Source of the DNA: Girardia tigrina
Lineage: Eukaryota
NCBI GenBank assembly: GCA_001938485.1
Contig: MQRK01255124.1
Coordinates: 1-64,000, forward strand
Length of the DNA: 64,000 nt
Direction of reading: 5' to 3'
Below are positions 22,601-61,095 of this stretch, piece by piece. Positions within the stretch are counted from its first letter, which is position 1, and each line of letters starts with the position of its first letter. The notes under the pieces are model-generated. The model had not been told where the DNA came from, made no database searches, and was given only the letters and a program-made list of their open reading frames with translations. The position numbers and the translations under genes were made by a program.

Positions 22601-25600
22601 ACAAGTGTAGGCCGTGGTAAAATGATGCCTTCAATGCACTTTAATTGACCCGTCACTGGTAAAGTGGGAAAAGGGCGAGCTTGGCGTCAAAGAAACATGG
22701 CAGCGACTTGCCATAGATGTGACACATACATCTGAGAGAAAATATATGACGCTGGTCGATTGTGAGCCGCGGAGGTACTCGGTTTGGAGGAAGATTCCTT
22801 CAGAATGTGACAATGATTTATATGCAGCTCTGAAAGTGGTGTTCAATGAGTTTGGTCCTCCACCAGAGCCTTTACTTAATAACTTCACAACGGACCGCGG
22901 AACAGCAATCCGGAAACTACTGTCGGAAATGGGAGTCGAGATGCAGTTTCGGTGCGCAAATCGGCCCAGCAGAAGTGGAATTGTTGAACGCTGTCATCGA
23001 ACCATCAAACGCATGCTGGCACGGAGTGGTAAGCCAATCAATGACATGGTAGCGTGGTACAACGCCACTCGGAATGCGGTGGGCGTGATTTCGGCGTCCA
23101 TAGTGTTTGCACAATGGCGACGACTGCCGCTACCGATCAATTTCACTGACGAGCTAGCAAGGGACAGCGGAGTTTGACAGATGAAGGAACTACGAGTAGA
23201 AGACACCGTGTTCGTAAAACCGGCGAATGTAACTTGCACGACTCAGTGGAAACGAGCAGTTGTGAGCGGATTGGCCAAACCCCATCAAATTGAGATCAAC
23301 GGGATTCCATTCCACGTGTCACATGTCAGACGCGTACCGATCCGAAAGCAACCACAAGGGTGACGAACGCAGACAACTGCAATGACAGCTCTGATGGTGA
23401 AGACGAGCAGCCGTGGGACAGAGTGACAGATGACTCCGAAGGTATCAAGTCACAGACCGACGAGGTGAGTTAGTCTTTCAATCAATCGCCTTTAAATGTT
23501 AGCATATAAATTTACTAATATTAAATCAATTTTTTTAATAATTTCTTTCTTTTGATCCATAATATATTTAATATTTAGTTCATTAATCTATTAATCTTTA
23601 TATGATATATAAGAGTTTTATTTTTCAGTACTAAAATAACATGATATCCTCATTTTCTTCAACAGCCGCATTAAAAAGTTAGAAGAGCCGCAGTTTGGCC
23701 AAGTCTGATCTATTGTTTAGTAGCTGACATAGAAATAAAAATATTTTTAATGTGTTCGAATTTGCATTTAATTTTTAGATTTTGATTAAAATACATGTCA
23801 ATACATTTTTTTGTTAACTCATCTACTAGTTATTGCCAAAGAATGAATATGAAAATTAATTCTGTTTTTTGATGACTAATGCATTTACGTCTATGTCAGG
23901 GATGTCCAACCTTTTAATTTAATGGGCCGCATTGCAAACTTAAATATTTCACTCGGCCACAAAATTACCAGAATAAGTTAAGCCTAGCAAGGAAATGATC
24001 TCAAATTTTGGAGATTTTCTGGGGGAGAGGAGGTTCTTTGTTTCTGAATGTTGCAACCTTTTTTTTCCATGGCCGCGAAGCTCATAGGTCATAAAAAACA
24101 TTTAATTTAATTAACCAATATTTATTCAATCAGACTTTTGACTTTGTCTTCCAGCCATAATGTTTTCAATATTTGCATCGAAGGATGCATTCTTAATTCT
24201 AAGAATGTTTGCTTTAGGTATGTCAGTCAACCTATTTCTATCTGCAGTTTTAATGTTTTTCATGCTTGAAAAAAAACTGCTCACAAGAGTATGTTATTCC
24301 CCACATGCATAATAATTTTCTGGATAAATTTAGAATTTGATTGAATTAGGTTTTGAGGGAATACAATTTCTTATAAAATAAAGGAAGTGTGTTCTCCCTA
24401 TGGAAAGTTTTTAAACCTTCCTGACTTTGCAGCTCAATCAGTTCAAATTGTTACTCCACTGGTGCTTTATCATATTCAAATGAAAATGGATCATTAAACA
24501 ATTTTAACTCATTTTCAATCTTTCTAAAGTCTGAAAATCTAATTGTAAACTCTCCAAGCAAATCTTCACATAATTTAGTATATTTTTCATAGTTTAAAGA
24601 AAACTTTTTCTCTCTTTCAGATGGACTACGAAAGTATACAATTTTCCCGCTTTTAGATGTGCTATAAAAATATTCAATTTCCTTGTGAAACTAATTATCC
24701 ACTCAAACATTGAGGAACATAACTGGTCCTTTCCTTGTAAATGTAAATTAAGTTAAGCTAATACTTCGGTGATGTCTACAAAGAAAGGTAAACCATTCAA
24801 CCATTCTTCATTTTCTAAAAAATCCACATTTTGCTTCTTTTCTTCCAAGAACACTATTATTTCAGGTAACAATAACTGAAATTTTTTAAGGTTGCTGCTT
24901 TACTGAGCAATCTAACTTTTAAGAAATATACTACGTCTTCATATTCACTGCCAACCTCGTCCAAAAATGCTTTAAATTCGCGTTGATTGAAACCCAGTGA
25001 TCTGATGAAATTAACAGTCTTGACAGGATCAATCATCAAATGTTTTATATTTAGCTTTTGAGCACATAATTGTTGTTGATCAATCAAGCAATGGTAACTG
25101 AGAATCTCTTGATCAACAGACTCTTTGAATAAAGTAATAAAGCCATTGTGTTTACCAGTAAGTGCGGGTAATTGAATAAATGTTTTTCCTATCAATATTG
25201 AATTTATCTAATGACATATTAACAAACTCATATATGTCCTTGCCTGTTGTTGTGCCTTTCATATGACACAAGTGCAACATTTCTTGAATGATATTGAAAT
25301 TTATATCAATTCCTCCAATGAAAATAACTAATTGTGCAGTATCAATTTGGTCAGTACTTTCATCCAACGCTAAACTGTGAAGAACGCATGCAGATAATTT
25401 GTCCTGCAGTGTGCGTTCAATATTATCACCCAAGTCATCGATTCTTCTAGCGATTGTATGATGTGATTGATCATGTTTCCTTTACTAAATTCACCTTGTA
25501 TGGACAGTACTCATTAAAAGCAATAACAATGCATTCCTTTATTAATTCTCCATCCTTTCTTAGCTAATTTCTCAGCTTTAAGGTAACTTACTTTTGTATA

Positions 25601-28600: not shown

Positions 28601-31600
28601 TTTTTTTTATAAATATTCATCCATCTCATGTCTAGCGGAACAAATCTCTATTGATATCATGTTGCTATATATTCTGATAATTTCTTATATTTCCACTGAA
28701 TAATCTTTAAATATTTTAAAAGAATATAAATAAACTTAAAAACATAAATGTTTATCAATTATCCAACATTGATATTAAAGGTTTAATAATGACAACAAAA
28801 AAAAGGTTGAGGTTAATGGAGGTTTGATTATTAGACTCATCAACGGTGACATTTAAGATGTTCTATAGAGAACAATTTCTTTCGGCTACCAGATCATCAA
28901 TATACTCGGCAGGCCCTATGACCACCTGCCGGTAACTATCAACTGATCATCTGTCTTCAATTCCCTTTTAAGATCTTTTCATATTCCCTGCCTGATCGTT
29001 AACACTCACTGCAGGCACTATGAGCACCTGCCGGTAACTATCAACTGATCAGCTGTCTTCAATTATCTTCAAAGATTTTTTTCTCATTCACTGTCAGATC
29101 GTCAACAATCACGACAGGAACTATGAGCACCTGCAGTAACTATCAACTGATCGGCTCCCAGCAATATATTTTAGCATGTGTCCAATTTATATCTATACTC
29201 CATCAACCTCTAAAAAAATTAAAATTAAAAAAACTCACAAAAACTGAAGATTGAAAAATTTATTAATTTGTAATCATCAACTAGGCAAAAAACTTTCTGA
29301 ACAAATAACAGATTCAAACTAATTTATAGTAATTCGTTTTTTCGAAATTTTCACATAAATTTAGAGATCGCTGGACTTTGTGTCACTAGTTTCGGCAGGC
29401 ACTATAAGCCCCTGCCGTTATCTGTTGACAACAAAGTCCAAATCAGTTTTTGTTTAATCAAATAAAAATAACAACATTTTCATTTAGATGAACAACGATC
29501 AAAGGTCAGATAGATCAAGTAAGTTTTCTAATTACATAGATAATAATAGTTTTTGTTAATTTCAGGATCAAAGGTGAAATCAATTAGGTAAGCTTTTTAT
29601 TCAATTAATTTTAATAATCATATATTTTATTTCAGATCAAAGTTCAAAATCAATTAAGGTTAGTTTTAATTAATTAATATTATATTTATTTAATAATCAT
29701 TTTATTTTATTTCAGATCCCGAGAAATTTTCAATCAGACTCAGTGCCCCCGTAATGAATTGGCCTGGTGTCGATTGGGAAATTTCTCGATCCCAACACTT
29801 GTATCGTACAGTTAGCAATGATGAAATCAATATCTCATCAGTACATGATTTAAAAAATCCCAATAAACTTAACGAAAGTGACATTTCAGCATTAATATTA
29901 TAATCCAAAGATCGTATATATGACACTTCATGTCACTCTTAAAAGTTGTTAAGTTTTTCCATCTAACATGAATCATTTATATTCAAAGGTTTTTTAAAAT
30001 CTTCAATCTCACAGTCGTAACTGACAGCTTTAATATTTACGTCTCGAACAACTACGTATTTCTTCATTCACTAGACCGTTGTCAAACACGAACGTTCTCT
30101 AGTAGTTTTGTATTTTATATGCTACAATCTCATAAAGCAATCATTTAATGAATTTTCCCGATTCAATGATTTTCCAGCTTTATCCAAACATATTCTTTTG
30201 TTTATTAATTCCCTTCATCTCAAAAATGTCCTTATATTCAATGGAAATTTAATAAATGTGCTAAATGTTAACCAAACAGAACAATCATTGACAAACCATC
30301 ACGTTGTTTTCTAGTAATTTCCTTGAAACATAACTTTCAAGTTCTTTTCTTTTATTTCTAACCTTTTCTCTCATTTGAACTTCGATCACTTCAGTTGCAT
30401 CTGGCAATTTCGCTCTACTAGCGCCAAATATTATATTAGGTTGGAAACTATGAAAGGGGCGTATTTTGTGTAATCTGTGTTCATCTGCGATATTTCAATA
30501 TTTCAATATTTCAATAATTGTTTATAATTTTAATTATAAAGCTTAAAAGTAAAGTTTTGTAAAGTTTTTTTTGTGTTGGTATCCCATATTTATTTTATTT
30601 TTATCCTAAACCAGATGGAAACAAAACGCGATTTGCATCCACTCTTTTTGTACGAGTTTAAATTAAATCGTATAGCAGCTCAAGCTTCAAGAAATATTAA
30701 TCAGGCATTCGGAGATGGATCAACCAATGAAAAAAATGCTCGATATTGGTCCCAAAAATTTCGTTCTGGGAATTTGAGTATCGTTAATGAACCTCGAGGT
30801 AGACCATCGACCCATATTGATTATGAGGAATTAAGGACAACTGTGGAATTCGATCCACACACAACTATTCGAAAACTTGGGTCCAAACTAATTGACGGAA
30901 CTGGAGATGATTGACCGCGAAAGCAAGTTACTTCGCAATACTCGGTTGCCGTTTTTACACCAAATCATCCCTTGTGATGAAAAGTGGATTTTGTATGACA
31001 ATGGAAAACGATCAAGCCAATGGGTAGATAAGAATACACCCCCAGGACACACCCGAAAACCGAAATTTCATCAAAAAAAATTATAGTCACCATATGGTGG
31101 AATGCCCAAGGAGTGATCCATTATTCCTTTCTACAACCAGGAGAAACTATAACATCGATGTCTTATTGTCGTGAAATTGATGTCATGCTTGAGAAACTTA
31201 AAAAAAACAACCAGCATTGCTTAATCGGAAAGGCCCTATTTTATTGCGCGATAACGCAAGACCCCATAAAGCTTCGATTACTGTTGACAAATTAAATTCT
31301 CTACAATATGAAATTTAACTACATCCTCCATATTCACCTGATATTTCACCGACCGATTACTACCTTTTTCGTAATTATGAATTATTTTTAAGAGAAAAAA
31401 AATACAATAACCAAAATAATATTAAAAATGACTTTGAATTGTTTATTAACTCAAAAAATAAAAAAAATTTTCAAAAAGGCATATATGATTTGCTCAATCG
31501 TTGGCAAAAAGTCGTAGATGCCGATGGGAATTATTTCAATTGAATAAAATAAATAATGTGAAAATTAGCGCTTTTCGTTTTTTATTTTCATTCAACACCC

Positions 31601-34600
31601 GTTTCATAGTTTCCAACCTAATACTTATTTTATCGTAGTCTATCATGTTTGAAAGTAATGTAGTTTCCAAAAATGATGTCAACATATGCAGGCAGTCTTT
31701 CAATCAAAATAGTTTCAACATAGCTGCACCTTAAAAGACTATCTACGTGACTAGTATAAACCGTTAACAGGTTCTTGGTTTAAACCTCGAAGATTCATGA
31801 ATTCATTTTGCAACTACTGGTACGGGTTGTATTGCTACTAATGTCGATCATCACCTTCATCATCTCCCCATCGATTAACACTTGTTGGATTAAAAAATTC
31901 TAAACCACTACAGTACATGAATAAAAAATTGACGATATAGAATTGTAGAAGTGAATCATAATTTTCGGTGTTAGTATTGTTAATAATTTGCCAATGGGTC
32001 ATTCGTCCTTCAATAGATGCAAGGTTGAGTCAAGTTTCTCTTTCCGATGTTGTTTTTTATCGCTTTGCTATTGAATTTGAAATAATCGACTGAACTGAGG
32101 ACTGAGAGCAAAAAATATTACTAACTTTAAATGTCTATAACTGGAACATAAATTCACAAATTACAAAAAACTAATCAAGTGGGCTGTTGTTTGAATAAAT
32201 CAAAATAAAATTCGCTTTAGTCTTCATTTTTGAATTTCATTTCTCATGAATATGTCGTCAGAAACATGAAGTCGTGAATTAATTATTCATTTATTTCAAG
32301 AAAATCCACAATCAAGTCAGAAAAAAAATGCCACAAAGGCAAATGTTTGTTCGAAAACAGTTTCTAACGTTATTAAAAACTTCAATGAGAACTTGAACGT
32401 TTTTAGAAAAATTGGTTCGGGAAGAAGAAAGGGCTTTTCGTGTACACAGAATGGGAAGAAAGTAAAGGTTATGTTAGAGAGAAATCCTAGTCTATCAAAT
32501 GAAAACTTGCGGTAAAGGCGAATTGTAGCGAGAAAACAGTTAGGAAAATTAAACAATTTGGGGGTTTAAAAATGTATAAAGTTCAAACAGTAACAGACCA
32601 GAACGCTAACAAGAACGTAAAGGCATAGCAGCGAGTCAGAAAGTTTAAATCTGGTTTTCTTGCGAAGAAAAAATGTTGCATTATGGATGACGAGACTTAT
32701 GTGCTCTTCGAGTTTTCCCAGCTACCCGGACAAGCATTTTACTCTGCAACTAAGAGAGAAGGAGTTGAAGAAAAAATTAGAAGCAAGAAAAAATCTAAGT
32801 TTCCCAAAAAATTTCTTGTTTGGCAGGCTATAATGTGGATGTGGGAAAAGGAATAAATGCTTTGTCACATATTGCACAATAAACACAGAACTCTTTATGA
32901 AGGAGTGCTTGCAAAAGCGTTTATTACCATTCATAATTCAACACAGAGGTCTTACTTTCTTTTGCCCGGATTTGGTATCGTGCCACTATGGCAAGGCAGC
33001 CAAGAAGTGGTACAAAGATAATAACGTCGATTTGGGGCAAAGAGAGGCAAACCCACCAAATTATCCAGAGCATCACCAAATCGAAAGATATTGGGCCCTG
33101 GTAAAAAGGCAATTAAAGACGACAAACAAGAGGGCACAGACAATTGCAGATTTTTGGAACAAGTGCAGCTAAATGCAGCTAAAAACGTGACAGAAACTAC
33201 AATTGCAAGTCTAATGGCAGGCATTCCGGAAAAGCTCGCAGAATTTATTAAAAAAAATAAATAATCATTCTTAGCTTACTAAAATTATTTTGAATTAAAC
33301 ACATTTTTCAAAACAGTAGGTATTTTTTCAATCAAAAATATGGTTTTGAAGATAGAGGATTTTCAAGTTATTAATATTTTTCGCACTAAGTCCTTACATC
33401 TGAATCATTTATATTTACACATTTCGGAATGCTAAAGCTAGTGGTTTAAGACTCCTCGAAGGTTTCTGCAAGTCTTCGTAACAACTTCATTATTATACTG
33501 TCGAGGCCAGATCTTTTTGGCAAAGTATCTCTAACTTTAGAGGAGGGATTTTTAGTTCAATCTTGGTTGGATTTGTTTTAATTTCCTCCTTAAACTGTGA
33601 AGGTAGTCAATGGCCGTAGTTAGGTACGCCGGATCTCGTTCGATCTCCGAAGTTGAGTAACCAACGGCCGCGTTAGTACTTATATGGGTGACCGATAGGG
33701 AAATCGCGGGGCCATTGACTATAGGTCAGGTTAGACTAGATGTCTGCTATAGGTACCATGTAGACCTGTAATACATGTCCCATGGTCGAATGGTTGGCGA
33801 CTAAACCAGCTCCCTCATCCAGAGCAACCTGGATGAAGAGGCTGTGTCGACATCTAGCAGGATGAAAAACAAAACCTAGCAAAGGGCGGATGAGCTCCTT
33901 GGAGCCAACGACCATCCATACATGAAGAGTAGATAGGCGCCACCAAGTTCCTTGCTTACTGAGACACTCAAAAATATGCAAAACCAAACCATAATGCTTG
34001 TGCATAATTGAGTGCACTCACGGCCCCATTGTTAACGTACCAAAAAATCTGGGAATAAATGATTTTACATTAAATGCATCGATTTAATATTTGATATAAG
34101 TCATAGTCTCGATTGACTATTTGATTTTGGCTATCAAAACAAACAATCTGTCAACAAAGAGTTGATATAGCCGAAGCAATGTAACTATTTGCCTTTACTG
34201 AACTCTCGATGTAATTTTCTTAGTATTTTTTGTCGATTCAATGACAAATGTTTTTCTGAAAATCGCATTCGAAGTTTTTTAATAATTAGAATTAGAATTG
34301 CAAAATCATGGGTACCGAGGTCATAACTGTTCTGTCAAATGTAGTGTAGCGAAACGAACCAGAGCTTTGAAAATTCATAGATCTTTTCCAGTAGCCACGC
34401 GGAACTACCATATCACGATCTGTATCTGATTAAAAGGTTTTACACGATACGTACGTTATGGGCCAAAACCATTCGAATCAGTGCTGCTATGCAAAAATCT
34501 GCAAGGTCAGCGGAGGTCGATTGGAGAGACAAAATTGTCATTTCAAAACATGGATTAGTGAACATTCATAACCGAGAGGATCGATTAAGGTGCTATGCAA

Positions 34601-35596: not shown

Positions 35597-38269
35597 CAAT
35601 ATTTATATTTATATACATATAAAGGATCTTAAATATTATTATGACATTCTCCTGAATTATTGATAAAATGTTGTTCCCAGACAACAGTGGCGTAGCAACT
35701 GTTATTGGCGCCCGGGTCGGTCCTAAGATTGACCGCCCCCATAACTTTAACCCTAAACCCTAACCCTAACCATAAGCCCTAACTTTAACCCATTATTCGG
35801 AACCCTCAATTAGTGTCTTCGTTAAAAATTAAATAGAGTTATGTTATTGCTGGTCTCAAAATCTTTACTTTAATTTCATATTTTTCTTACGATACTCTTA
35901 TTCTTATACTAAGAATTATCAAGTAACGAAGTCATTTCAAAATTTTCAATTTTATTTACAATTTACAAGCGAAATTCTCATACTTCCATTTTCTACAAAT
36001 TTATTGATAACAGTATCAAAATTCATTTCAGTAGCAAGCTTTCTCTCAATGGAAAGGACTGCCAAGTCTGTAAGCCTTGATTGACTCATTGTAGCTTTAG
36101 TTTTGAAAACTAGCATTCGCAGCTGGTAACGCTAGTAGCCCGGGTAATAAAGATGCCCAGCAAGATCGCAATATTAAGGACGAATTCCCAAGGTTATCTC
36201 TCTGTATGAAGCTCAAAAGTTCTAAAGGGTCTGTTGATTCTGTAGTTTTCTGAAACTCGGACAAAATACTACATTCTTCTTCTTTCGGCTTACAATTCCT
36301 TTTTCTCCACCTCGTCTTCTAATGTTCTAAGCTGGCAATAGTAATTATAATCAAAGAGATTCGATAGTGCAATGAGAGTATATTTGTTTGCATGATCATA
36401 AACTTGTTGAAATGTTGAATATATTTCCTCAATTAACCTATCTACGACAGACAGCATTTCCTGTCTCAACCCAACATCAAATGTCATCGCTACATCGACG
36501 CTCCATGCTTATCCACATTTCAAAGAAGAGCTTCTAAGATTCGACCATTGCAATGCCCACCATCCTTTCTCTATTCTTAAAAATGTAATCTCTCAGTGCT
36601 GAGCTTGACAGAATTTTGATGCAGACCAAGCAATTTTGTTTAAAGACACTTCTTGGCATCATTGATCTCTGGTAGAACATAATTCTAAAGGCTCAGAAGC
36701 GACAGAAACGGAAATGACAGTACTGATGATAGAAGAAAAGAGGCATCTGATCTTGTCGTCACATTCTCTCCTTCTTTGGTGAACTTCACCAGAGCAGTCA
36801 CGACAAGTGATAATTTGTTCAAGAGAATATTTATAGCATTTGATCGAGTGCTCCATCTAGTTTCCACAAGCCGCTTAATATTTAGACCAGTCTCATGACT
36901 CAAAACATCCCAGCGATGCGTATATGCGGAAATGAAAGAGAACAACCGGTCCAATATGCCAAAGCATGTAACAGAGTGAACCACAACAGAAGCTGCATGT
37001 ATGCAAGTCAAATTCTGGGTGTGATTTGAGCATGGCACAAATACAACTTTCATGTTTATTTTGGAGATGTGCTTCTGGACGCCCGATCGATGGGCAGCCA
37101 TAACAGTAGGCCATGGCAATCATCAATCTGAATCTCGTCCTTTTCTAGTTGTCTGAATATCAGTTCACAAATTTCCGTTGCGCTTTTTCACTTTGTCTCG
37201 ATAAAGCGGACAAACGACTCCTCCACTTTCACTTCATTTTCATCCATGTTTACGAAGCTTAAGATCTCGTTGAATTGGTCGTTGTACGATATAGCTGTCT
37301 AAAATTATTCAAAAATACTTGCTCTTCTTGACTTGTGCGATGATTTTCTGTCTCACCTGCTGTGTTAATATGACTAGAAACTCATTTTGAACCTCTAGTA
37401 ACAAATATGAATTGATGATATATTTTCCCAGCTTAATTTTTATCAAATTTTCACGTAGCACAGGGTCATACTTAGCAAACAAATGAACCAATTCCCAATT
37501 TTTTATTCTATTTTCCTGATTTCCGTCGTCGTGAATGTCTTCCCGGTGGCCCCTTAGTCCCAGTAATCTAGCCAGACTTTCTCGCAATTTCTTAGTTTCT
37601 TTCTCAATTAATTCTTCCTCTACTTTTTTTATTGCCTTTCTTTCAGCGAGCCGGATCTCTACCTTTTTCCACTAGAGGCAGCAGCAGTATTGATTTAAAA
37701 TGTTGTATTAGTAATATAAACTTCATCTAAAAAGAATTTGTGCATCTCTGGCAAGAGACAAATCTTCAAGCCCATTGGCAGTTTTCACTAAATTCAGTGT
37801 CATTGTAACATTCTGTTATGGCCAGCATTTCTGATTAGATTTTTCTTCATTTTTTTATATATATAATATTATTTCCATTCCCAAATATCACCCCCAACAA
37901 TAATGCCACCCGGGGCGGACTGCCCCCCGCCCCCCTTCTTGGTTTGTCAACAATGAAATACCACTACTCTGATTGTTTCTTTACTTACTCAGTAATGCAG
38001 CACAGTTGACTTTGGTCAATTTGTTGTGGAGAAAAGGGAGCGATCTTCGGATGCTCTCGAGATGTTCTGAGGACAGTGTCAGGTGGGGAGTTTGACTGGG
38101 GCGGTACATCTGTCAAATGGTAACGCAGGTGTCCCAAGGTGAGCTCAACCAGGACAGAAACCTGGTGTAGACAAAAAGGGGAAAGCTCACTTGATTTTGA
38201 TTTTCAGTACGAATACAGACCGTGAAAGCGCGGTCTATCGATCCTTTTGAGTTTATCTTCAGAGTTTGA

Positions 38270-38302
<33 letters not shown>

Positions 38303-41300
38303 CAGGGATGTCTGTGCGGCCAGTGGGCATACTTCTACGTAGTATCCCTGAGAAACTAGAAGAAGGGTTTGATTCCGTCTCTAGGCTAAAGTGCCCGAAA
38401 GCTAGCCTTTCATTGCGGAAACAGCCGGCAATGTATCGTATTCAGGAATGGGCCAGGCGGAACTAAAGCATGCTCGACCCCAACATTGGGTTAGTGCTTG
38501 TTGAGAACCATCAGAGTCCCAGGCCTCCTATAAAGCCTCAGGCTTAATACTCGACAGGAGTTGAGGTGCACCACAGGGATGGGATACAATGTCGCTCGCC
38601 TCCCCGTGGTGTATCCTGGGAACTAGAAAGAGGGTCTCTCCCCTTTCTAGAAATAGAAGGGGGGGTCTCCTTGATCTTGCTAAATGAGTAGACGGATCGA
38701 TAGTGCCAGCAACTCTGTCTTTCGCTAAGACGCCGCTAACAAAACCCAAAACAGGGGTCTGGAAGGACCCGAAGTCATTAAGCTCCCGAGAGGGGGATCC
38801 CTCGTTAAGGATTCCACTATCAGTGGATTGAAGATTGGAACATGGAATGTTCGAGGATTGACCGACGAGAAGATACTAAACATCTCATGTATCTTTGAGA
38901 AATTAAAACTGGATTTGTGCATACTCACAGAGACGCACTGGCTTGGAAACGACATTACCTCATTCGGGGAATGGAGGATTCATCACAGTGGCAGTACGAG
39001 TGGCACTCGTGAAAGAGGCGTAGCCGTAATGATTCGATCGAGAGATTCCAAAGATGTGGAATTTGAAGCAGTAAGCGAGAGAGTTTTTCTCTGTCATATA
39101 CCCCACAGAAAGATCACATTAGTGGGTGTATACGTTCCAACTGACAGTGGATACTCGAGTGAAGAGAAGGAAGAGTTCTTTATTACACTACAAGAACAAA
39201 TTGAGAAGGCAACGGCTGAAGCAGAGAAGAGACGATTCGAGCTAGTAATTGGAGGTGACTTCAATTGCCGGCTCAGCCGGACGGACGAGAATGAGAAGAC
39301 GGTAGGGTGCTACACTAGTTCAAAGGTTACATCAGAGAATGGAGAACTTCTTATAGATCTCGCAGAGGCGTGCAACTTAAGGATAGAGAACACGTTCTAT
39401 AAACACAAGTTGACGCAAAGAACTAGCTGGACGCACCCTGCCACAAAGCAGAGACTACTATTGGACCTATTTCTGGTGCAGAAAAGCAGATGCAACAGGA
39501 TTAGGAATGTCAAAAGTTATCCTAACTTTGACTGCGGTTCAGATCATGACTTAGTCGTGTTAACAATACTTGTCAATAATAATAAGCAACTCAAATTGAC
39601 AAACGACAGAAGGAAGAAAAGCAAAGGAAAGGTGGACAGATTCTCTCTGCAGAATAACAAAGAGGCTATCAGCGCGGAGATTGGACGGGAATGTCCAAAG
39701 ATCGAGAGCTGGGACGATCTGGAAAAGACGGTCACAAGTACCATGGAGAAGTACCGTAAGAAGAAAGTCCTACTCAATCAAAGGTGGCTACATGAGCACC
39801 TAGAGGAGCTGAAGCCTCTACTGCAGGAGAAATGGAAACGCAGAAGAGAATATATGCAGAATAGGTGTGAAAGAACCTACTCAATATGGAAGGCTGCAAG
39901 ATTAACAACCTTGCGGATTCTCAGAAAATGGAAAAGAGAGAGGATAGAGACTATAGGCCAAGAGATAGAAGGGATTCTTAACAGAGAATGTCTCGGAAAG
40001 ACTTCTGAGCTATACACGGAACTCAGAATCTTGTGTAACAGTCAAACAAAGGAATCCTCTCTCTGTTCAGTGGAGAGTAGTATCAAAGACGAAGTGTTGG
40101 CAGAACACTTTTCACGCCTATTCAAGAAGAATGAAGGAGACTATGTCTTGGAACTGGATCAAAGTCAACAATTGGATATCAACTATTTACCGGACGTGGA
40201 AGAAGTGGGTGCCGCAATAACACAACTCAAAAACGGCACGGCTGCTGGAAACAATGGTATCATTCCAGAGCTATACAAGTGGGGAGGCCACCAGCTAACG
40301 ATCAAGATTATGCAATGTTTCGAGGCCATCTGGGAGGGAAGAGCAGAATTCCCGGAAGCATGGAAAACGGCGAAAGTCGTTATCCTTTACAAAGAGAAAG
40401 GGTCTAAAAAAGACTTGAATAATTACAGAGGAATATTCCTACTTGATGTAGGCGGAAAGATAATGGCTCGAATCATCGCAAACCGACTGATACCACATCT
40501 TGAAAGGATACTGGATGATTGGCAATTCGGCTTCAGGCCGAAAAGAAGTACTGGACAAGCGATAGGTATCATAAAGAAGATACAAGAAGAGGCAAGATAC
40601 CGAAGCAAAAGCGTATATGCAATATTCATCGACCTTGAGAAGGCTTTCGATAGTGTTCCCAGGAAAGTTCTCTGGGACTGCCTTCAAGGAATTGGGGTAC
40701 AAGGACATATGCTGAACGTCATCATGAAATTCCACGAAAACTTCACGGGTAGTATAGGAAAAGAAGTATTCCAGATGGACAAGGGAGTGCGACAAGGTTG
40801 TGTATTAGGACCCCTGCTATTCAACCTTGTCTTCGACTGTGCGATCAAAATATCAGTCAAGGATGGTCTATCAGGTGGAGTACAGGTGATTCACAATGGA
40901 GAAGTACTACTCGTGAATCGATTGGCGTACGCAGATGACTTGTGCCTGCTGGACGAAGATTATGGGAATATTGAGAAAAATATGACATGTCTAAACACTG
41001 CGTTTAAGAAGATGGGGCTCAAAGTAAACATTGGGAAAACGAAGATACTTAACCTCAATGGAGCCAGATATATCACGGCACGAGACGAGCTGAACGCCGG
41101 GATCGAATGGGTGGATGAATTCTGCTACCTGGGCTCCATAATTGAGAGCGGAGGGAGCTCAGGTGTAGATATCAAAAGCAGAATCAAGAAAGGAGTAATC
41201 AAACTAAGAACGATTAGACCAGTGTTGAAGAACAACAAGTTGTCCCTCTGAAACAAGCGCAACATCATCTCCAGCTGTGTATTCCCTGTGGTCTACTACA

Positions 41301-44300
41301 GCTGCGAGAACTGGAGGACAAACGAAGATCATGTCAAGAAGCTAAAAGCATTCCACAACTTGTGCACGCGGCGGACTCTGGGAGTTTCAAAAACTGAACG
41401 AATAAGAATGGATGAATTATCTATTGGGCTGCAAAGTCCGATGGATATTCTAGCACGAAGAAGATTGAATCACAACATCAAAATCGAACTCGGAGATTGC
41501 CCGGAGAACGTCAAACAAGTTTACGAATGTGAACTTATCGGAGGGAAAAAGGTAAGTGGGAGACGCAAACAACATTTGGCTGAATGCCTAAGAGTGGACG
41601 CTAATTGGCTCTTCGGTGACAATTACAGTGTCGGAGAGTTTAAAAGGGATATTCAGCAGGAGAACTTGTCTACAACGGATGCGAAGATGGCGAAAATCTA
41701 CAGAATCAAAAGAATCAACAGAAATGGAGACGAGAAAACACTAAGATTAGTGTTGCCCCGTCTGAAAGAGCACAGCTGCCCGATGGATGCCTGTTACAAG
41801 CAGTATGCAGAGGTGAAGGAGCTAAACAGGCATCTCAGAAGGGATCATGAAGGAGCCGAACCCATCCCGAGGAAACAAAGAGAGAAGAAAGCCCAGCCAC
41901 GACAGAAGAAAGGAATCTACAATTGCCCGCAGTGCCCCAAAGAATACAAAACTGCAGGATTCCTCAAAATCCACATTCAAAAGAATCACAAAGAAGAATC
42001 AGAACAATCCAACGCCCAGCAAGGAGATAATTTGGTCATCGAGAGAGAGGAAGAGCCGACAACAATCCAAACCAACCTTCAATTACCAGACGCAACTGAG
42101 AACACGCCGAGGATTTCTGGGACAGAAGACAACTCTACATATCACCGTGAAGAATCGCCGCACCGACAATACCGATTGCCAGCCAACTATGCAAAAGCAA
42201 AAGGACATTTTCAGTGCCCATTCCGAGGATTTTACGCGTCCACCGTAACCGCCAAAGGTATGTATGGCCATGGCACCAAATTCCATGGCTGGTCTTTAGC
42301 AACTGGAAAACCGATCGTTCGCAGGCAGAAGGACACTGACCCCGTAGGAGGCCTATCGGGGGGCCCTTAAGGACTTTAGTTTGGGTGGACCCTCTAAAGA
42401 GCCTTAGGCTCAATACCATTGAAAGAGATGGGAGGCCCACCACAGGGATCAGGGATCGCTGTGCGGCCAGTTGGCATACTTCTACGTAGTATCCCTGAGA
42501 AACTAGATTTGGTTCGATTCTGTCTCTAGGCTAAAGTGCCCGAAGCTAGCCTTTCATTGCGGAAACAGCCGGCAATGTATCGTATTAGGAATGGGCCAGC
42601 AATCCATTCACTAGGCTACGCTTTTCAATCTGGGTGTGAAGGCAGTGGGGAGTAGTGACCCTGCTGTCGATGGTTGGATTGCATCTTCATGATCTAGGAT
42701 GAATCAATCCCGGTGAAGGGTGTCGTAATGACGTCGTTGCATCTTCGGACTGGCGGAACAAAGGCATGGATCCTAACATTGGGGGAGTGCCCGTTGAAAA
42801 CCATCAGCGTCCCAGGCCTCCTATAAAGCCTCAGGCTTAATACTCGAAAGGAGTTGAGGTGCACCACAGGGATCGGGGATCGACTGTGCGGCCAGATGGG
42901 CTTACTTCTTCGTAGTATCCCCGAGAAACTAGAGTGGGTTCGACTCCTGAATCTAGGCTTAAGTACCCGAAAGACGTATACGTAAGTCGTCTGTAAGATG
43001 ACTTACTTGGCCCGATCGATCGAAGGACACACTAACACTGTGTTGCTCTAATTTAACTCGGTAGTCAGCAAAGGAGTAGAACATTAGTTTCGAGATCCGG
43101 AGCATGACATGTGAGCTTCACTGATATACTCTTCCTGATGAAGTGCAACCTTGAAATGTTTTTTGTTGCACATGATTCGGGTCGTGTTCAGACGGCTAGA
43201 AACGATTTTTTTACACTCTCCTGTGCCAACTGGTTGGGGTTTCTAGTTTGTCAAGGGTATACATTGCACTAGCCAGAAGAAACTAGTACTTGCACGAAGT
43301 GTCCCCGGATAGTGAATTGTTGCATTGTGACAATGGATTGATTTTTTTTCGATCTGTGAAAATCTCGATCAGCCAATGTGAGCATATTGAAATGATTTGT
43401 TTTGCCCGCATTAGCGATTTTTTTTGGTTGAGATCTTTACTGGTCTGATCTATTGAAGCGGTGTGATGGTTCATGAACTAAACTAGGAACGTTATGCGGT
43501 CTGTACCCTCGGATGGTCTGAATTACTCAATGGCAGTAGGTAGTAGCATTTGATATTTATATGGTACTAAATAATTAGTACTAGCTACTACCGGCATTTT
43601 AACTGAGTCACTGTTAAAGAGTAAGGAGGTAAGTTCAAGGTGTCGGTAATCTTATCCTTCCTATTGAAATGTTCTTATTTGGGAGTGGACTGATTGCAAG
43701 CTTTGCAGACCTGGCGTGGAAAGTTGCAGACCTGATCTACTAAATTCGTTAGACCTTGCACAATATCCTGATCAATCACGCTTTTTCTAGATATTGTAAT
43801 CAGTGCCACATAATTGTCACAAAAAAATTAAAAAAAAAGCGGACTTGATAAACAAAAAATAACAAAACATTTCAAATATCATTTATCAAATCACATCTTG
43901 TCGTAACGAATTACATGTCACGTATAATGCATTCAATAACAAAAAACATTTCAAATGAACACAATATACGCGAGTACTCCCCATTTGCCGGTTATTACCA
44001 ACAATTGAGCATAGGCACCCTATATTTTTAAATATTTTTTTAGTGTCGAACTTTTTTTTAATTTAAAACAAAAATTCAATTTTGAAAAATATTTATTTAT
44101 TTTTATTGATTTTTTAATTAAATTTAATGTATTTTTTACTTTTGTAATTGTTAAAAGAATTTTTTTGAAAAAAATGTGACTTTAGTAATTTAAAATAAAT
44201 TTATTAAAATATTTTGATTAAAAATTTGGGCTGGGGTGCTAGGGTGAATGCAGTTGGTTACACAGAGGTGCTACGCACGGTTGTTAAGTAGTTATTTATA

Positions 44301-44579
44301 AGTTGTTATTGTAACGTCATCACTGAGCAATCTGGGGGTCCCGTGAAGCATGGCAAAAATGACTTCGATGACTCTATCCGCGGGCGGTGAGAGAGTTGTT
44401 GGGGACATTACTCGAGTCATAGGGCTTAGCCTGTGGAGTACATTAGTACAAGGGTTGGTCTCAGCACGGAGAATAGTTCCAACTAGTCATTATATATGGC
44501 GCATGGGACAATATTAAAACTCCGGATTCACCACAAGGATAACTGGCTTGTGGCGGCCAGGCGTTCATAGCGACTTGCT

Positions 44580-44622
<43 letters not shown>

Positions 44623-44657
44623 GAATTCACAAAGAGTTGGATTGTTCACCCACCAAT

Positions 44658-44699
<42 letters not shown>

Positions 44700-47600
44700 A
44701 TTTACCGTACTATATAATATACTTTCTACTACTATAATAATATACTTTCACAATTGTACAAAGTGCAATGTATTCATGTTTTAATATAATATAGTGTAAA
44801 GTGAGGCAGAACATACATATGGTATAGCCTAAGCAAAGGGCGAAGCAAGAAAAATATCGAAAATCTGCCTGAACACATGTATAGTAACCCATAGGTAAAT
44901 AGTCGGAATATGATCTTAGATTCTCGAAAAAATCAATAAATAGTGCTTTATTAATATGTTGTGTATAATAGCTGTATAATAGTTGTATAATAGCCTAGGC
45001 ACAGGTCGAAGCAGACGCTTGTGGCCACCAAGCGTTCATAGCGACTTGCTTTTTTGATCCTTCAAGTTCGGCTCTTTCTATCATTGTGAAGTAGAATTCA
45101 CAAAGCGTTGTATTGTTCACCCACCAATAGGGAACGTGAGCTGGGTTTTGACCGTCGTGAGACAGGTTAGTTTTACCATACCATATAAACCGTCATTACA
45201 ATAGTAATTCTGTTAAGTACGAGAGGAACCACAGATTCGGATCACTGGTAAATGTGACCTCAAAAAATGTTGTAACCTCATGCTGTCGCAGACGAGTAAT
45301 TATGTTTGTCGTTGATTACATTCAGATGCGCATCCGTTAGAAATGCAACGTCCTGTTTATCCTGGTTGAACCGTCTTGGCATTGTCTACAAACGATGCCG
45401 ACGTCGGAACAAACAGGATGCCCCTGGATTCACAATAACAATTATGGAACTTTATGGAATTTGTAAGTTCAATTAATTAATTAAAATTTTTAATTAAGGT
45501 TTTTTGTTTTTAGCTTTACTCGAACGGATTTGAAGCAGTGGGACCGGAATCCTGACCCAGCTCATCATCGTGACATGACGGGCTGTGGGCCCCCGCCTAG
45601 ATCAATGTCGATCTGGGTTGATTTTATGTTGTGTAAGCACATATTCTTCTCCAGTGAATGCATCGCTCATGTCTACATGAAATGTGTCGACTGTGAACTT
45701 GTGGCACTGTCGTGTCTGCTTGGTCTAAATTCATGAAAACCATCATTATTATATATGATAAATTAATAATTCTAATAAATTAATAATGAGATGGAAGTGG
45801 AGAAAAGGAAAATTTTAATTATTTTAGATAATGCACCATCCCATCCGAATATCCAACTTTCGGCAATAGAGTTTTTATATTTGCCAAAGAACACAACTTC
45901 CATAACACAGCCATTGGAAATGGATTTGATAAAGGCATTCAAGGATCATTACAAGAATTCTTTTGTTGATTTTTTGGCAACTGAAGAAGATGATTTAAAT
46001 AATGATCCATTTAAAAACATTAATATTAAAAACGCTATTGTTTTTACTTTTATTGCCTGGGAGTTAATATCCAAAGAGTCGATTATTAATTGTTTCAAAA
46101 AGGAATTTTCCAAAAAAGAAGAAACCAACCAAAATTCATATGCTTGAGGAAAATATAGAGGACGTTATTGTTGAGGTTTATGAAAAAAAATTTATCAGAA
46201 CTACTGGAGAAGGAGACCGGAAAAGCTGAAATTTGTGAAAAAGTTCGTTATGATAAACTAAAGCTGGGATGGGAAAAACTTAAAGAATTGGAAAATGTTA
46301 TTGAATATACACCTTTTGATGTTCAAAAAGAATATATCAAGTTTAGAATGCAATTTAATACGCCACTGTCAGATATCTGGGTAGTGGGATGATTGATTAA
46401 TATTCAATATTATTATAATATATATTAAGAACATTAATTGGGTTTTCTTTACATTTATTTATATCACAATTTGAATTATCACTAGAACAATTCTCCGTAA
46501 AACTTGTGTAGCTCGTCATAGTTCTTGATTGATAATCTTTAATAATATTCTTTAACGTCTTATTATTAAAACAAATTTAAGTTACAATTTAATTATTAGA
46601 AAAATAATTTATATTTTAAATTTAAAATAATTTTTATTTATTTTAAGAAATTATTATTAAAATATTATTTATGAAATATTAGTTTAATTTTAAAGTGATT
46701 ATTTAACTTTGAAGAATTGATTAAACAACCCGACGTTTTAAAATATCAATCTTCCATCTGGGTGGGAGAAACACAATCCTAAAACAACATACCAAACAAC
46801 ACACAATAAACACCATTCAAAAATATTCCTCACAATATATATTCAATATTAATTGTTGCTCACAAAATACAGATAATTGTAAGTACATTGTATTTTTAAA
46901 TTTTTTTATAATGTAGCTTTGCTTTTTAGAATCCGCATGAAGTATTCAAAAACTCATCTCCTAAAAGGAAAGAGGCAATGGGTGGAAATGGTGGCAATCC
47001 AAGGAATGCAATTGATACTGTGCTTTCAGATATGAATCTGAGCACCGAAATTCTTCCACACATGCCAAAGAAAAAAAAGAACTTTAACAGAGTAAATTTA
47101 CTAATTAACAGGAACTCCAACATCCAACACAACCACATCCGTGTTTCCAATAACAAAGAAGTATTAAGTATCAATTCATGATTCTGGAGAGGATGATCAA
47201 GACAGAATATTGGCAATAGGCGAGAGAGAATTTCTGGCGGAGCTGGACAAACACTCAATATTTGGGGACGCCATCTTTGACAAAACACTCAATATGCTCT
47301 ATCAGTATGTATTGCATTGATTTCCTTCTTCTGAGAAAAAAATCAAGGGACATATAGAATAATGCTTATTATATTGAAAGACCTTCTTCCAAACTTCTTT
47401 CCTCATAAATTCCTCATTAACTTTGAGAAAGCTCAGGAAGAATTTCCAACAGTTCAAGTGAAAGGATGTGACTTCCACACTTGCCAAAGCTTTGTTAGGA
47501 ATTCTGGATCAGTTGGAATGAAAACTGAGTTTGATTCTGATCATGATGTCAAAGTTAGAATCAAATCAGTAACTGCTGTTACATTTGTTCCACCAAATGA

Positions 47601-57814: not shown

Positions 57815-59125
57815 CTTAGGCTGTCCCAAAAGTCCTCAGGTGGCCTTTAAAAACACACTAATATTTTACCAAATTTGGACTGAATATTATTCAGACTGTC
57901 ATAAATACTGTGTTAAAATTTCAAAGCATAAAATTAAAAAAAAGTAAAATTTTGTTTTATTAAAGTATTGAAATTTTAAAAGTGCAGCGAATTCAACTCA
58001 AGCGGTTTTTAACAATGGAACCAAAAAAATATTGTCAACGTTTTTTTGTTCTAACTCAAAGTAAAAGAGGATTCTCTGCTTCAGAAATTCTTCAGCAACT
58101 TCAGCAGGCATGGGAAGACGCAAATCACCCAGCACTGAAAACTATTCAACAATGGTTGACTGATTTTAAAAAAGAAAAGCGAACGTCCTTCGACGATTCA
58201 TCAAGAAGTGGCAGGAACAACGCATTAACACTGCAAAGCATATATGCCATGTAATTTCACAGATTGGTGATGAAGCATATTCCAACATAGCGATCGAGGA
58301 TGAGACATGGGTCTTTTTCCAAGATAGAGGAAAGAAAGAAGATTACAAAGTTTGGATTCCTTCTAATGCTGTTCCACCAAAAGTGATAAAGCCATCGCCA
58401 ATGACTGATAAAAAATCTCTTGGTTTCGTAACCTTTAACTGCAACAAACGTTTTAATGTAAAAGCACTGCCATATGGTACCAAGATTGATTCCGAGGCGT
58501 ATGTGAACTTTGTTCATGATACCGGTGAAAAATGGCGGAAACTTAGATCTAACAGCATCATGCTAAAGGAGCTTAAGTGGTGGCATGATAATGCAAGACC
58601 TCATTCTAGCAAAGAAACAACTCTTTTTTATGAAAGAAGAAAAATTGAAATTATCAATCGCCCTATACTCCAGATTTTAATCTGTGTGACAGATTCTTGT
58701 TTTCAAAAATGAAGAAAAGTTTTAAAAATCATGTTTTCAAATCACATGAAGAAATTGAAGAAGCTTGTTAATTCTTTTTTTAATTCTTTATCAACAGAAA
58801 CATTAAAAAATCAACTAGATAAACTTTTAAACTATTTTCAGTTGATTATTGACAACAATGGTGAATTTATGTTATTATGTTAAGTTATGTTGTTGCTTAA
58901 GAAATTTTTAAAATATTTTTTTTAAATAAATTTTTAAATTCGCTGCATCTAATTTTTTTGTTGGTTAATAATATTATTTTTTTGGTAAGTTTCAAATTTT
59001 ATGCTTTGAAATTTTAACACAGTATTTATGATAGTCTGAATAATATTCAGTCCAAATTTGGTTAAATTTGGTAAAATATTAGTGTGTTTTTAAAGGCCAC
59101 CTGAGGACTTTTGGGACAGCCTAAG
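57815..59125 (+). mobile_element. Mariner-like element with ~120-bp TIRs, internally deleted
   Basis: cttaggctgtcccaaaagtcctcaggtggcc... mirrored at about 58995-59125; TA flanks; DETWV, HDNARPH, PYTPDFNLCD. Confidence 0.92.
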
Positions 59126-59525
59126 TACATTTGGTATATAATATGTGTAAATATATATTAATATATAATATATGTTTGGTTTACTCGATACAGACGCTGA
59201 ATGTCAAGCATACAAACAAACTGTTCATGATTTGTGTGTTTTTACTGGGTGTAAGTAATTGAGTTATTACTTTCATCAGTTATTACTGGAGTTAAGGAAC
59301 ACTTTAAAGAAGAAAATACAGAAGAATGCAAACATTAAAATACCATATTTTGAAGGATTAAGAGCTTTTAAGAAGAGTATTTGTAAAATGATAAGTAGTG
59401 CCAAAGTAATCTCTGTCACATCCAAAGTTGAAAGTTTCCTCTAAAAAAAACAGTTTGTGGATTGCAAGCTAATCTGGTATATAAATTTAATTGTCACGGG
59501 TATCGAAATTTGTACGTTGAAGAGT

Positions 59526-60974
59526 TCTACTGAATGACTCATTTGTAGATTTAGGACTTAAGATCAATATAAATAAGACCAAAGTTATGAACCTAAACGG
59601 AGATACCAAAGTTCTCACCACCGGACACCAGCTTGAGACTGGTATTGAGTGGGTATTCAAATTCGTCTATTGGGGTTCCACAATCTCCTCAAATGGTACC
59701 GCTGAAGATGAGATAAGAGAAAGAATTCAAAAGGGTACCAGGAAGATCAGGGACCTCAAACCGGTTTTGAGGAGCTCCAAACTCTCTTTACGGAACAAGA
59801 AGAAGATTGTCAGCTCTTGCATACTTTCCGTAGTATACTACAGTTGTGAGAGTTGGCGAACAGGTAACAAAACAATCAAGAAGCTGGCTGCCTTTCATAA
59901 TTTGTGTACTCGCACAATCATGAAAGTGCAGAAGACTGAGAGGATACAGATGGACACTATCGACATTGGACTCCCGCTCCCCACGAATATCATTGCAAGC
60001 AGAAGACTTGCCTATCACAGCAGGTTGGACACCTCTGATACACCAAATATTATGAGGTGTGTGTGGAGAGCAACAATGCCAATGGGAAAGAAGATCAGTG
60101 GGAGAAAGAATCAAGCTCTCTCCGAATGCCTCAGAGTGGATATACAGTGGCTCTTTGGGGATAGTGCAAAGTATGAAGACTTCATACACCACATTGTCAC
60201 AGAGACCCCACAATAGATAGAAGGCAATACATCAACTTCTTAATAAGAGAAGGGAAGCAGAACAGAACAAGAGCCGATCTACCGAAAGTACTCAATGAGA
60301 GAGATAAACTCCTTCAATGTACGATAGAAGATTGCTTTAAGAAGTTTGCCGAACAAAAGGAGCTAAATAGACATCTCAAGCGGTATCACACGGAATCCAC
60401 AGTAAGCATCCCGCTTCAGCTCCCAGAAGATGAAAAACCGTTTAAATGTACCAAATGCAGCAAAGGTTACAAAACGAAAGGATGGTTCACTAGGCATCTG
60501 CGTAAAGATCATCGAATAGAAGCGAGGGAGAATATCAATGAACATCTGACAGAATAATCAGTGCAATCCAACAGAAGAAGCGACAATCCAGACAGAGACG
60601 AAGAACCCACACTTATCCAAACGACAAATTTTCAGCAACAGTTACCCCGACTATTTCAACGGTGGTGGAGCAAACGACTTATCCCGAAGATACACATTTG
60701 TCTTTTAGGATCGCAGATCCAAATGCGAGGGGAAATTTCAAATGTCCCTTTCGCGGCTGTACCAAGTCCACCAATACAGCCAAAGAGATGCTCAATCATG
60801 GTACCACAATTCATGATTGGTCGTTTGCAACAGGGAAGCCAAAGAAATTTCGGAGACTGAAGCACTCCGTCAACGTAGGAGGTCTATCGAGGGGCAGCTA
60901 GCTCTCTTAAGTTTGGGTGGACCCTCTAAAGAGCCTAGTGGCTCAATACCATTCGAAAGAGATGGGAGGCTCAC
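59526..60974 (+). mobile_element. 5'-truncated relative of the unit-2 LINE
   Basis: LGLKININKTK...VVYYSCESWRT...LSECLRVD, zinc fingers and the same 3'UTR; flanked by acgttgaagagt at 59514-59525 and 60973-60984. Confidence 0.9.
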
Positions 60975-60984
60975 GTTGAAGAGT

Positions 60985-61095
60985 GGAATATAACGCTGCT
61001 CGCCTCCCCGTGGTGTATCCTGGGAACTTGGGAGAGGGGTTCTTTCCTTTCTAGAAATAAATTGGGGAGGTTTTCTTGATCTAGGCTAAATGAGT
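60985..61095 (+). ncRNA. Degenerating HDV-like ribozyme
   Basis: ggaatat...gctcgcctccccgtggtgtatcctggg...gCtaaatgagt; one P1 mismatch. Confidence 0.75.

Follow-up and report, generated by a model that had tools for sequence, protein, structure and literature searches.

The closest described counterparts of the retroelement array considered here are R2 and its non-autonomous partners, the SIDEs, of Drosophila and other animals (PMC3774820; PMC3414825; PMC6765202). R2 inserts into 28S, carries a 5' HDV-like ribozyme and an ORF that lacks an obvious AUG, and is co-transcribed with the rDNA, and the SIDEs combine a ribozyme head with the 3' end of their partner. All of these features have counterparts in the present array; co-transcription would be one of them, although the insertion lies in an orphaned piece of rDNA. 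R2 differs in that it uses a restriction-like endonuclease at a site some 500 nt further upstream, is nearly exclusive in its specificity and produces no regular duplication, whereas the present LINE has an APE domain, a 9-nt duplication and several targets, and its short companions, in contrast to R2 SIDEs, are not recent deletion derivatives. R1, the R2/R1 hybrid SIDEs and the R1 arrays resemble the locus in APE-type 28S insertion with a fixed target duplication, and the tandem copies of R1 arrays likewise lie between identical rDNA duplications, which has been explained by double insertion (PMC3414825; PMC5932611). R1 itself, however, encodes two ORFs, lacks its own ribozyme, duplicates 14 bp and inserts at a different site.

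Other systems share single features with the locus. The RTE and Baggins elements are promoter-less APE LINEs whose 5' HDV-like ribozyme frees them from host transcripts by cutting at the first base of the element, and no 28S site, trains or C-terminal zinc fingers are reported for them in the two papers concerned (PMC6765202; PMC3774820). L1Tc and NARTc of Trypanosoma cruzi are an APE LINE and a non-coding partner with a common HDV-like head, a relative site preference and tandem occurrence (PMC6765202), but they differ in their kinetoplastid host, a head doubling as promoter and an RNase H domain. Pokey of Daphnia occupies one 28S site plus resembling sites elsewhere, and its non-autonomous derivatives, the mPok MITEs, share that 28S site (PMC3849761); Pokey, however, belongs to the DNA transposons and targets TTAA. 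In planarians, R5 and LIN9/24/26_SM are 28S-resident non-LTR elements as well (PMC3636483; PMC4640811), but they belong to the restriction-like-endonuclease (R2/NeSL) group. The R5 and R2 sites are no more than a few bp apart, and the insertion point described below is about 500 nt from the R1/R2/R4/R5/Pokey cluster (PMC3849761). Identity with planarian R5 was rejected on the basis of the APE domain and the insertion point at U2449|A2450, as opposed to a restriction-like endonuclease acting beside the R2 site (PMC3636483; PMC3849761).

A four-unit train inside a 28S rRNA fragment

The window, i.e., the whole stretch of 64,000 nt analyzed here (Girardia tigrina, contig MQRK01255124.1), contains assembly gaps at 14509-14676 and 18979-19160. 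An eEF1A with 94% identity to a land planarian protein marks the host as a triclad flatworm. All features described below lie on its + strand. An upstream 28S rRNA fragment (37771-38302, about 2412-2827 of the Rfam eukaryotic LSU model) ends its alignment at GGGAU, at 38302 and model position 2827. The alignment resumes at 44538 with GAUAACUGG, model position 2825, and the 28S fragment that follows the train occupies 44541-44697 (model 2828-2984). Between the two halves, four same-strand units of 269 nt (unit 1, 38303-38571), 3860 nt (unit 2, 38581-42440), 415 nt (unit 3, 42450-42864) and 1658 nt (unit 4, 42874-44531) were found, and all four end in CAC at the 3' side. They are bounded by copies of one 9-nt target segment, located at 38294-38302, 38572-38580, 42441-42449, 42865-42873 and, with one mismatch, 44532-44540. 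Counted from 38292, the first copy is 11 nt long, and exact copies of ACCACAGGGAT start at 38292, 38570, 42439 and 42863, while a one-mismatch copy starts at 44530; with up to one mismatch allowed, 6 matches were found against 0.61 expected by chance, a number attained in 0 of 100 shuffles. Since the AC of the unit-terminal CAC also occurs in 28S, only 9 nt are unambiguously duplicated. The units and identical spacers reported in the first-pass annotation agree with these positions and lengths.

Alignment to an annotated 23S gene places the break point at E. coli 23S U2449|A2450, bearing out the position proposed before. We take this to be, by nomenclature, the insertion position of the L2449 group I introns. 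The two share the LSU rRNA nucleotide position, but the insert here consists of retroelements, and between 37500 and 46500 no group I intron family was matched at E up to 10. The break itself thus stands at the nucleotide first named; the interrupted sequence, however, is a 28S fragment and not a 28S gene. This orphan fragment covers model positions about 2412-2984 only, and the locus holds an extra, diverged 28S copy (model 2833-2984) and a short further match (45207-45237, model 3022-3052) of 20.5 bits, which is under the Rfam cut-off. Neither 18S nor 5' 28S was detected nearby in the Rfam model search around the locus. The flanking 28S is both duplicated and decayed, so that the train documents insertion into a decayed fragment and not into working rDNA units.

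The LINE, its non-coding companions and their HDV-like heads

Unit 2 is a full-length LINE with a single ORF of 1181 codons in one frame (38828-42370), which is free of frameshifts, is interrupted by one in-frame stop and has no in-frame AUG upstream of the APE N-terminus. The ORF contains both domains of the single-ORF element recognized in the first reading, APE (about 38837-39556) and RT (about 40406-41140), and has C-terminal fingers of the C2H2 type (finger at about 41918-41989). A tail hairpin (42399-42411) lies within the 70-nt 3' UTR. The single ORF, the N-terminal APE followed by RT and the short 3' UTR make up an RTE-type layout, and the closest named match is CFDP2, presumably an annotation of RTE/BovB-derived sequence; judged from sequence features, an RTE-like affiliation is plausible. 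To our knowledge, C-terminal C2H2 fingers are not typical of RTE.

Units 1 and 3 constitute a non-coding family, here called family A; they are 88-93% identical, and unit 3 contains about 152 additional internal nt. The tail hairpin of the LINE is common to both (38533-38545 in unit 1) and is preserved through a GC to AU exchange. Without an ORF, with the 5' ribozyme and 3' end of the LINE type and with the same target duplication, the two units have the composition of SIDE/SINE-like partners. Unit 4 has the head (about 42874-42970, 84% identical to that of family A) and the spacer of such a partner, but not the tail. The LINE-type hairpin is absent from it, its body and tail are unrelated to family A, its middle is AT-rich, and no ORF, repeat or relative was found in its body. 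The sharing of LINE ends by non-coding elements, as first suggested, therefore applies to units 1 and 3 at both ends and does not extend to the tail of unit 4. Metagenome scans (degenerate head pattern; relative P0001) returned zero family members, so the short units have no copies known beyond the window. The 5' ends reproduce spacer letters: units 1 and 3 begin with the same 7 nt that close the 28S spacer, and the LINE begins with the final 5 nt of that spacer.

HDV-like folds, also claimed earlier, are present at the 5' ends of 4/4 units as double-pseudoknot pairing in the helix table. The head of the LINE (38581-38693) consists of P1, P2, P3, P1.1 and a long P4, that of unit 1 spans about 38303-38397, and the canonical nested double pseudoknot with the helices in this order is found in the LINE and short-unit heads. 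Under the double-pseudoknot model, the LINE heads form 41 pairs with 97.3% of cells paired, compared with 37-53% when slid, and their P1 shows a GC to AU exchange; the short-unit heads form 23 pairs with 95.7% paired. LINE and short-unit heads are equal in architecture but differ in the letters of P1, P2, P3 and P1.1. The first P1 pair is the usual G-U in the LINE and C-G in the short units, and the P2 helices of units 3 and 4 contain mismatches. The P3-L3 core of the LINE and the conserved core of R2 ribozymes, as given in PMC5035012, differ at a single base. J4/2 GCUAAA is conserved in the LINE and units 1 and 3 and changed in unit 4, and the P3/L3 letters and the C in J4/2 required of an active-site core are in place.

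The Rfam model RF00094 matched the LINE head over its full length with 32.9 bits (E 0.004-0.09; Rfam cut-off 50 bits). The core was aligned letter for letter, and J4/2 was misplaced because P4 is 56 nt. The Rfam gathering score was reached with none of the HDV models, the LINE head included, and the short-unit heads gave no Rfam match whatever. With a covariance model made from the LINE heads alone, the three short-unit heads were the best non-self matches (E of 4e-4, 8e-4 and 0.06). Minimum-free-energy z-scores from single-sequence folding were unremarkable and uninformative, and a home-made HDV descriptor was discarded as far too permissive in AT-rich DNA. The LINE head is accordingly modeled as a good predicted HDV-like ribozyme, under the Rfam cut-off.

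Target choice and the proposed growth of trains

The exclusive 28S specificity assumed in the first-pass annotation finds no support in the relatives of the LINE. Those with 79-90% nt identity occupy other sites, and the full-length ones found in other assemblies are flanked by sequence other than 28S. L001, the closest of them at 90% nt identity and without a difference in the last 120 nt, lies outside 28S, as do at least five other 3' junctions of relatives; with at least 6 non-28S junctions, the relatives depart from R elements, nearly all copies of which are at one rDNA site. The window itself contains a second train at a different target (59499-59524), which consists of a diverged motif and the 9-nt GTTGAAGAG and is homologous to the 5' flank of L005, L007 and L008. 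This train has two units with identical 9-nt spacers: a 5'-truncated LINE copy from a lineage with 72% identity (59525-60974; at least 2 frameshifts, 1 stop) and, behind the repeated GTTGAAGAG (60975-60983), a ribozyme-headed LINE copy cut short on its 3' side (60984-63494; at least 5 frameshifts, 6 stops). The second target recurs in another host. It presumably resembles a GIY-YIG nuclease motif, as in Penelope-like elements; a Pfam search of it gave no match, the pieces being too short or too decayed.

The motif GGTGT-N9-TAC, at 38277-38293 in 28S, ends immediately before the first of the 9 duplicated nt, and its position directly upstream of the duplicated segment is common to five different targets, some of which come from chimeric metagenome contigs. 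Compared in register, the upstream positions of the 28S and second targets match at 13/20 (p about 2e-4), and the 14 nt nearest the nick match at 9, against 1-6 when slid. The derived motif recurs in three further independent 5' flanks (chance about 0.25% each), and its pattern has only 3 sites on the + strand of the window. Its absence from the 5' flanks of L001 and L002 counts against it, as do three other motif sites in the window that are empty.

Our preferred reading, to which we assign a probability of about 60%, is that a promoter-less, motif-guided LINE with ribozyme-released RNAs builds trains by serial insertion at a motif that stays intact. The LINE would be an APE-type element of a triclad flatworm, the site of which is shared by two non-coding families. 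Its 5' HDV-like ribozyme would free element RNAs from read-through transcripts by self-cleavage, and family A, with the 3' hairpin of the LINE, is a likely rider on the LINE reverse transcriptase, mobilized in trans. Integration would occur beside GGTGT-N9-TAC: the bottom strand would be nicked directly after TAC, with priming possibly via the AC shared with the CAC end of the RNA, and a top-strand nick 9 nt further on would produce the 9-nt duplication. Reading of the motif by the C-terminal zinc fingers is a guess as to the protein part involved. Because the motif is wholly upstream of the duplicated segment, it would survive beside the new copy, and as the recognition site would be intact after each insertion, trains could grow serially, each new unit probably joining on the 5' side of those already there, behind an identical spacer. 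The frameshifts and stops per copy lend this insertion order weak backing. The 28S sequence just 5' of U2449|A2450 is universally conserved, and its perfect match to the motif would explain the four-unit train at this site, which may be the old home of the family; the second motif-bearing repeat hosts the two-unit train. Tandem elements, those of R1 among them, are known to arise by double insertion with a target copy kept between the two elements (PMC5932611).

Four insertions at a single nucleotide would also be expected of a strictly 28S-specific R-type system, in which the endonuclease recognizes the PTC-proximal 28S site only and other copies are strays or other lineages. The 28S spacer letters repeated in the unit 5' ends suggest long residence at the site, and in this they resemble R2 lineages carrying duplicated upstream 28S letters (PMC3774820). 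Such a system is nevertheless quite unlikely given L001 and the other junctions outside 28S and the second target, recurrent in the window and in another host. The membership of units 1 and 3 in one family and the duplication and decay of the flanking 28S itself would fit an array that was copied as a block from another train, by a multi-unit read-through RNA or by template jumps between RNAs, or expanded by unequal exchange, and was carried in with its 28S flanks; R2-type enzymes jump templates in vivo (PMC3414825), and insertion of oligomeric transcripts is assumed for Penelope-like elements (PMC6765202). Yet 7-12% divergence and a 152-nt indel separate units 1 and 3, the units differ in kind, the ends of units 1-3 are complete, and the first train would still need repeated use of one site, so that we regard a block origin as unlikely. 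Wrong joining of repeats that share an 11-mer would be conceivable in a repeat-rich region and in a window with assembly gaps, but the nearest gap is >19 kb from the array, the junction geometry is exactly that of target-primed insertion, and an independent second train has equal geometry, which leaves an assembly artefact very little room.

Significance for rDNA parasites

An extension of the preferred reading, which we consider improbable, is that the 28S site near the peptidyl-transferase centre is the ancestral home, as suggested by the repetition of the final 5-7 nt of the 28S spacer at the 5' ends of the elements, and that trains are ribozyme-punctuated polycistrons with RNA-inherited targeting. 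A downstream head would cut just after the spacer, and the upstream RNA would therefore end in the 9-nt target copy. Base pairing of this copy with the nicked target could then return the RNA to the same site. If true, target choice would be partly RNA-inherited rather than endonuclease-fixed.

Under motif-guided serial insertion, the train is likely a variation on a known type of rDNA parasite and not a new kind. It would extend ribozyme-headed, co-transcribed partnerships of LINEs and non-autonomous elements from R2-type to APE-type LINEs in flatworms, and it adds an insertion point in the peptidyl-transferase centre, which coincides with none of the R1/R2/R4/R5/Pokey sites considered here. 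A recognition motif located beyond the duplicated segment would also provide a simple rule, open to checking, for how head-to-tail trains arise. Should the motif hold, this would be a rare APE LINE with a target code that is readable from sequence alone.

Units within the broken 28S fragment

The alignment to the Rfam eukaryotic LSU model stops at 38302 and restarts at 44538, and the 11-mer ACCACAGGGAT occurs in the window between 38292 and 44540 in four exact copies and one copy with a single mismatch, all on the + strand, against 0.61 matches expected by chance. The intervals that these copies delimit are 269, 3860, 415 and 1658 nt, in agreement with the first-pass annotation, and its placement of the insertion point at E. 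coli U2449/A2450 was borne out by alignment of the downstream 28S piece to the annotated E. coli 23S gene. Only a 28S fragment (model positions about 2412-2984) is present at the locus. Its portion at model 2833-2984 recurs 470 nt downstream of the first copy (44546-44717 and 45017-45188, 92% identity). Either a tandem duplication or an ancient insertion that produced a very long duplication of its target could account for this repeat. The two copies are separated, after GACAGGTTAG, by about 300 nt of AT-rich sequence.

Unit 2 (38581-42440) is a LINE with a single frame of 1181 codons, interrupted by one in-frame stop and free of frameshifts, which encodes APE and RT domains and a C-terminal C2H2 finger and is followed by a 3' UTR of 70 nt. 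No in-frame AUG was found upstream of the APE N-terminus, either in the window copy (38582-38857) or in its intact relatives, so that translation would have to begin at a non-AUG codon or internally; the lack of such an AUG is common to many ribozyme-processed elements. The intact relatives in other assemblies are 1169 aa (93% aa and 90% nt identity) and 1145 aa (82% aa and 79% nt) in length, and the next-nearest are only 27-29% identical. With CFDP2 as the closest named relative, and L1 ORF2p and R2 proteins as the PDB matches, the description "RTE-like" appears reasonable.

Units 1 (38303-38571) and 3 (42450-42864) belong to one family, with 93% and 88% identity over two blocks and 152 extra nt in unit 3. 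A 5-bp hairpin followed by AAUAC is common to both units and all LINE tails, and a GC to AU exchange in it preserves pairing. This tail is absent from unit 4 (42874-44531), the body of which is unique sequence with an AT-rich centre.

HDV-like folds at the 5' ends

The LINE head (38579-38663) is matched over its full length by the HDV ribozyme model RF00094, with a score of 32.9 bits against a cut-off of 50. The score is lowered by the 56-nt P4, which causes the model to misplace J4/2; the F. prausnitzii model locates the J4/2 segment beyond this long P4. Across ten natural heads, 97.3% of cells pair in the P1/P2/P3/P1.1/P4 double pseudoknot, compared with 37-53% when slid, and P1 includes a GC to AU exchange. 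The LINE P1 begins at the first base 3' of the spacer with a G-U pair, and the P3-L3 core differs by one base from the conserved R2 core (as quoted in PMC5035012).

An Rfam search of the heads of units 1, 3 and 4 returned no match. When a covariance model was built from LINE heads only, these three heads were the top non-self matches in 20 kb (E = 4e-4, 8e-4 and 0.06). The short units, for which HDV-like folds had been proposed earlier, fold into the LINE-head architecture. The J4/2 segment is kept, the letters of P1, P2, P3 and P1.1 differ, and unit 4 carries a compensatory change in P1. The weak points of these folds are a C-G first P1 pair and, in units 3 and 4, an imperfect P2.

Targets inside and outside 28S

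The specificity for 28S alone that had been suggested was not supported: in nine contigs with close relatives, at least five distinct non-28S sequences are found at the 3' junctions, and the 5' flanks vary. A lineage of 72% identity makes up a second train in the window (59525-60974 and 60984-63494), in the order target, 9-nt GTTGAAGAG, 5'-truncated copy, GTTGAAGAG again and ribozyme-headed copy. Its target shares homology with the sequences that flank the relatives of 82% aa identity, in which the duplication is ATCGGAGAG. Instances of this target were located at 59467-59524 and 34520-34567 in the window and, in contigs of other assemblies, at L005 1-55 and L002 3972-4025; the decayed 3' half at 34520, a third instance, is preceded by unrelated sequence. 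In frame, the target looks like a GIY-YIG nuclease motif whose I-G-E codons are spanned by the 9-nt duplication, and it may be part of a Penelope-like element; a Pfam search of it gave no match.

With the left edge of the duplication as the anchor, the 28S and second targets agree at 13/20 upstream positions (p about 2e-4), and the 14 nt nearest the duplication match at 9/14, versus 1-6/14 when slid; on the 3' side of the duplication the two sequences are unrelated (4/20 matches). The pattern GTGT-N9-TAC, derived from these two targets and then sought in other 5' flanks, was found immediately 5' of the element in three more independent flanks (each about 0.25% by chance) and is missing from two 5' flanks of relatives. 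The distance from motif to ribozyme core varies from 2 to 22 nt at the relatives' 5' junctions (contigs L003 83-89, L004 66-87 and L007 50-53), as expected if each element is cleaved at its own first base and the second strand is primed imprecisely. The full motif GGTGT-N9-TAC occurs at four sites in the window, including the 28S site; the other exact sites, 39864-39880 (+), 9131-9147 (-) and 31024-31040 (-), are without insertion, and the motif alone is insufficient to guarantee occupancy. One uninserted site falls within the LINE's own ORF.

An eEF1A ORF at 1282-2673 (+, 463 aa), intact and without introns, is 94% identical to that of the land planarian Humbertium and 81% to that of Schmidtea, which places the host among the triclad flatworms. 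This ORF, which may be a retrogene or a real gene, is surrounded by a transposon-rich stretch. A full-length 5S rRNA gene (33606-33720, +) and a reversed 5.8S gene (3970-4111, -) are far from the train in AT-rich, transposon-rich DNA, distant from any 18S or complete 28S, and the window resembles a graveyard for rDNA fragments. A mariner-type transposase fragment was detected by Pfam at 7809-8315, and the ORF at 58383-58712 resembles such a transposase by eye alone. The GC-rich block at 20000-24000 is possibly an LTR element; its match to the integrase core (rve, E 0.0023) is weak and does not reach the Pfam cut-off.

Proposed insertion route and related systems

From the insertion geometry, motif, folds and shared tail, all directly observed, we infer the following steps. 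The LINE enzyme would nick the bottom strand after TAC, the AC common to all targets and element ends may act as priming microhomology, and the top strand would be nicked 9 nt further along. Because the new copy would leave the adjacent motif undamaged, the same site could be used again, and arrays would extend at the 5' end with identical spacers. Double insertion by this route has been described for R1 and other elements (PMC5932611); here it would involve units of different kinds. In the second train, the numbers of breaks (3 in 457 codons upstream, 11 in 741 downstream) are weak evidence that the upstream copy is the younger. Read-through transcripts would be cut by the ribozymes into unit RNAs.

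The closest known systems are R2 with its SIDEs, R1 with hybrid SIDEs and tandem arrays, ribozyme-headed RTE/Baggins elements, and L1Tc/NARTc; Pokey with its MITEs is close conceptually. R5 and the planarian LIN families use another endonuclease type than this LINE. A search limited to published papers found no account of ribozyme-headed LINEs in planarians or of an element at this 28S position (U2449/A2450). Units 1 and 3 open with a repeat of the final 7 nt of the 28S spacer, and the LINE opens with a repeat of the spacer's final 5 nt, which is reminiscent of some R2 lineages in which P1 uses upstream 28S letters (PMC3774820). These spacer-repeating 5' ends are hints that 28S may be an old home of the LINE family.
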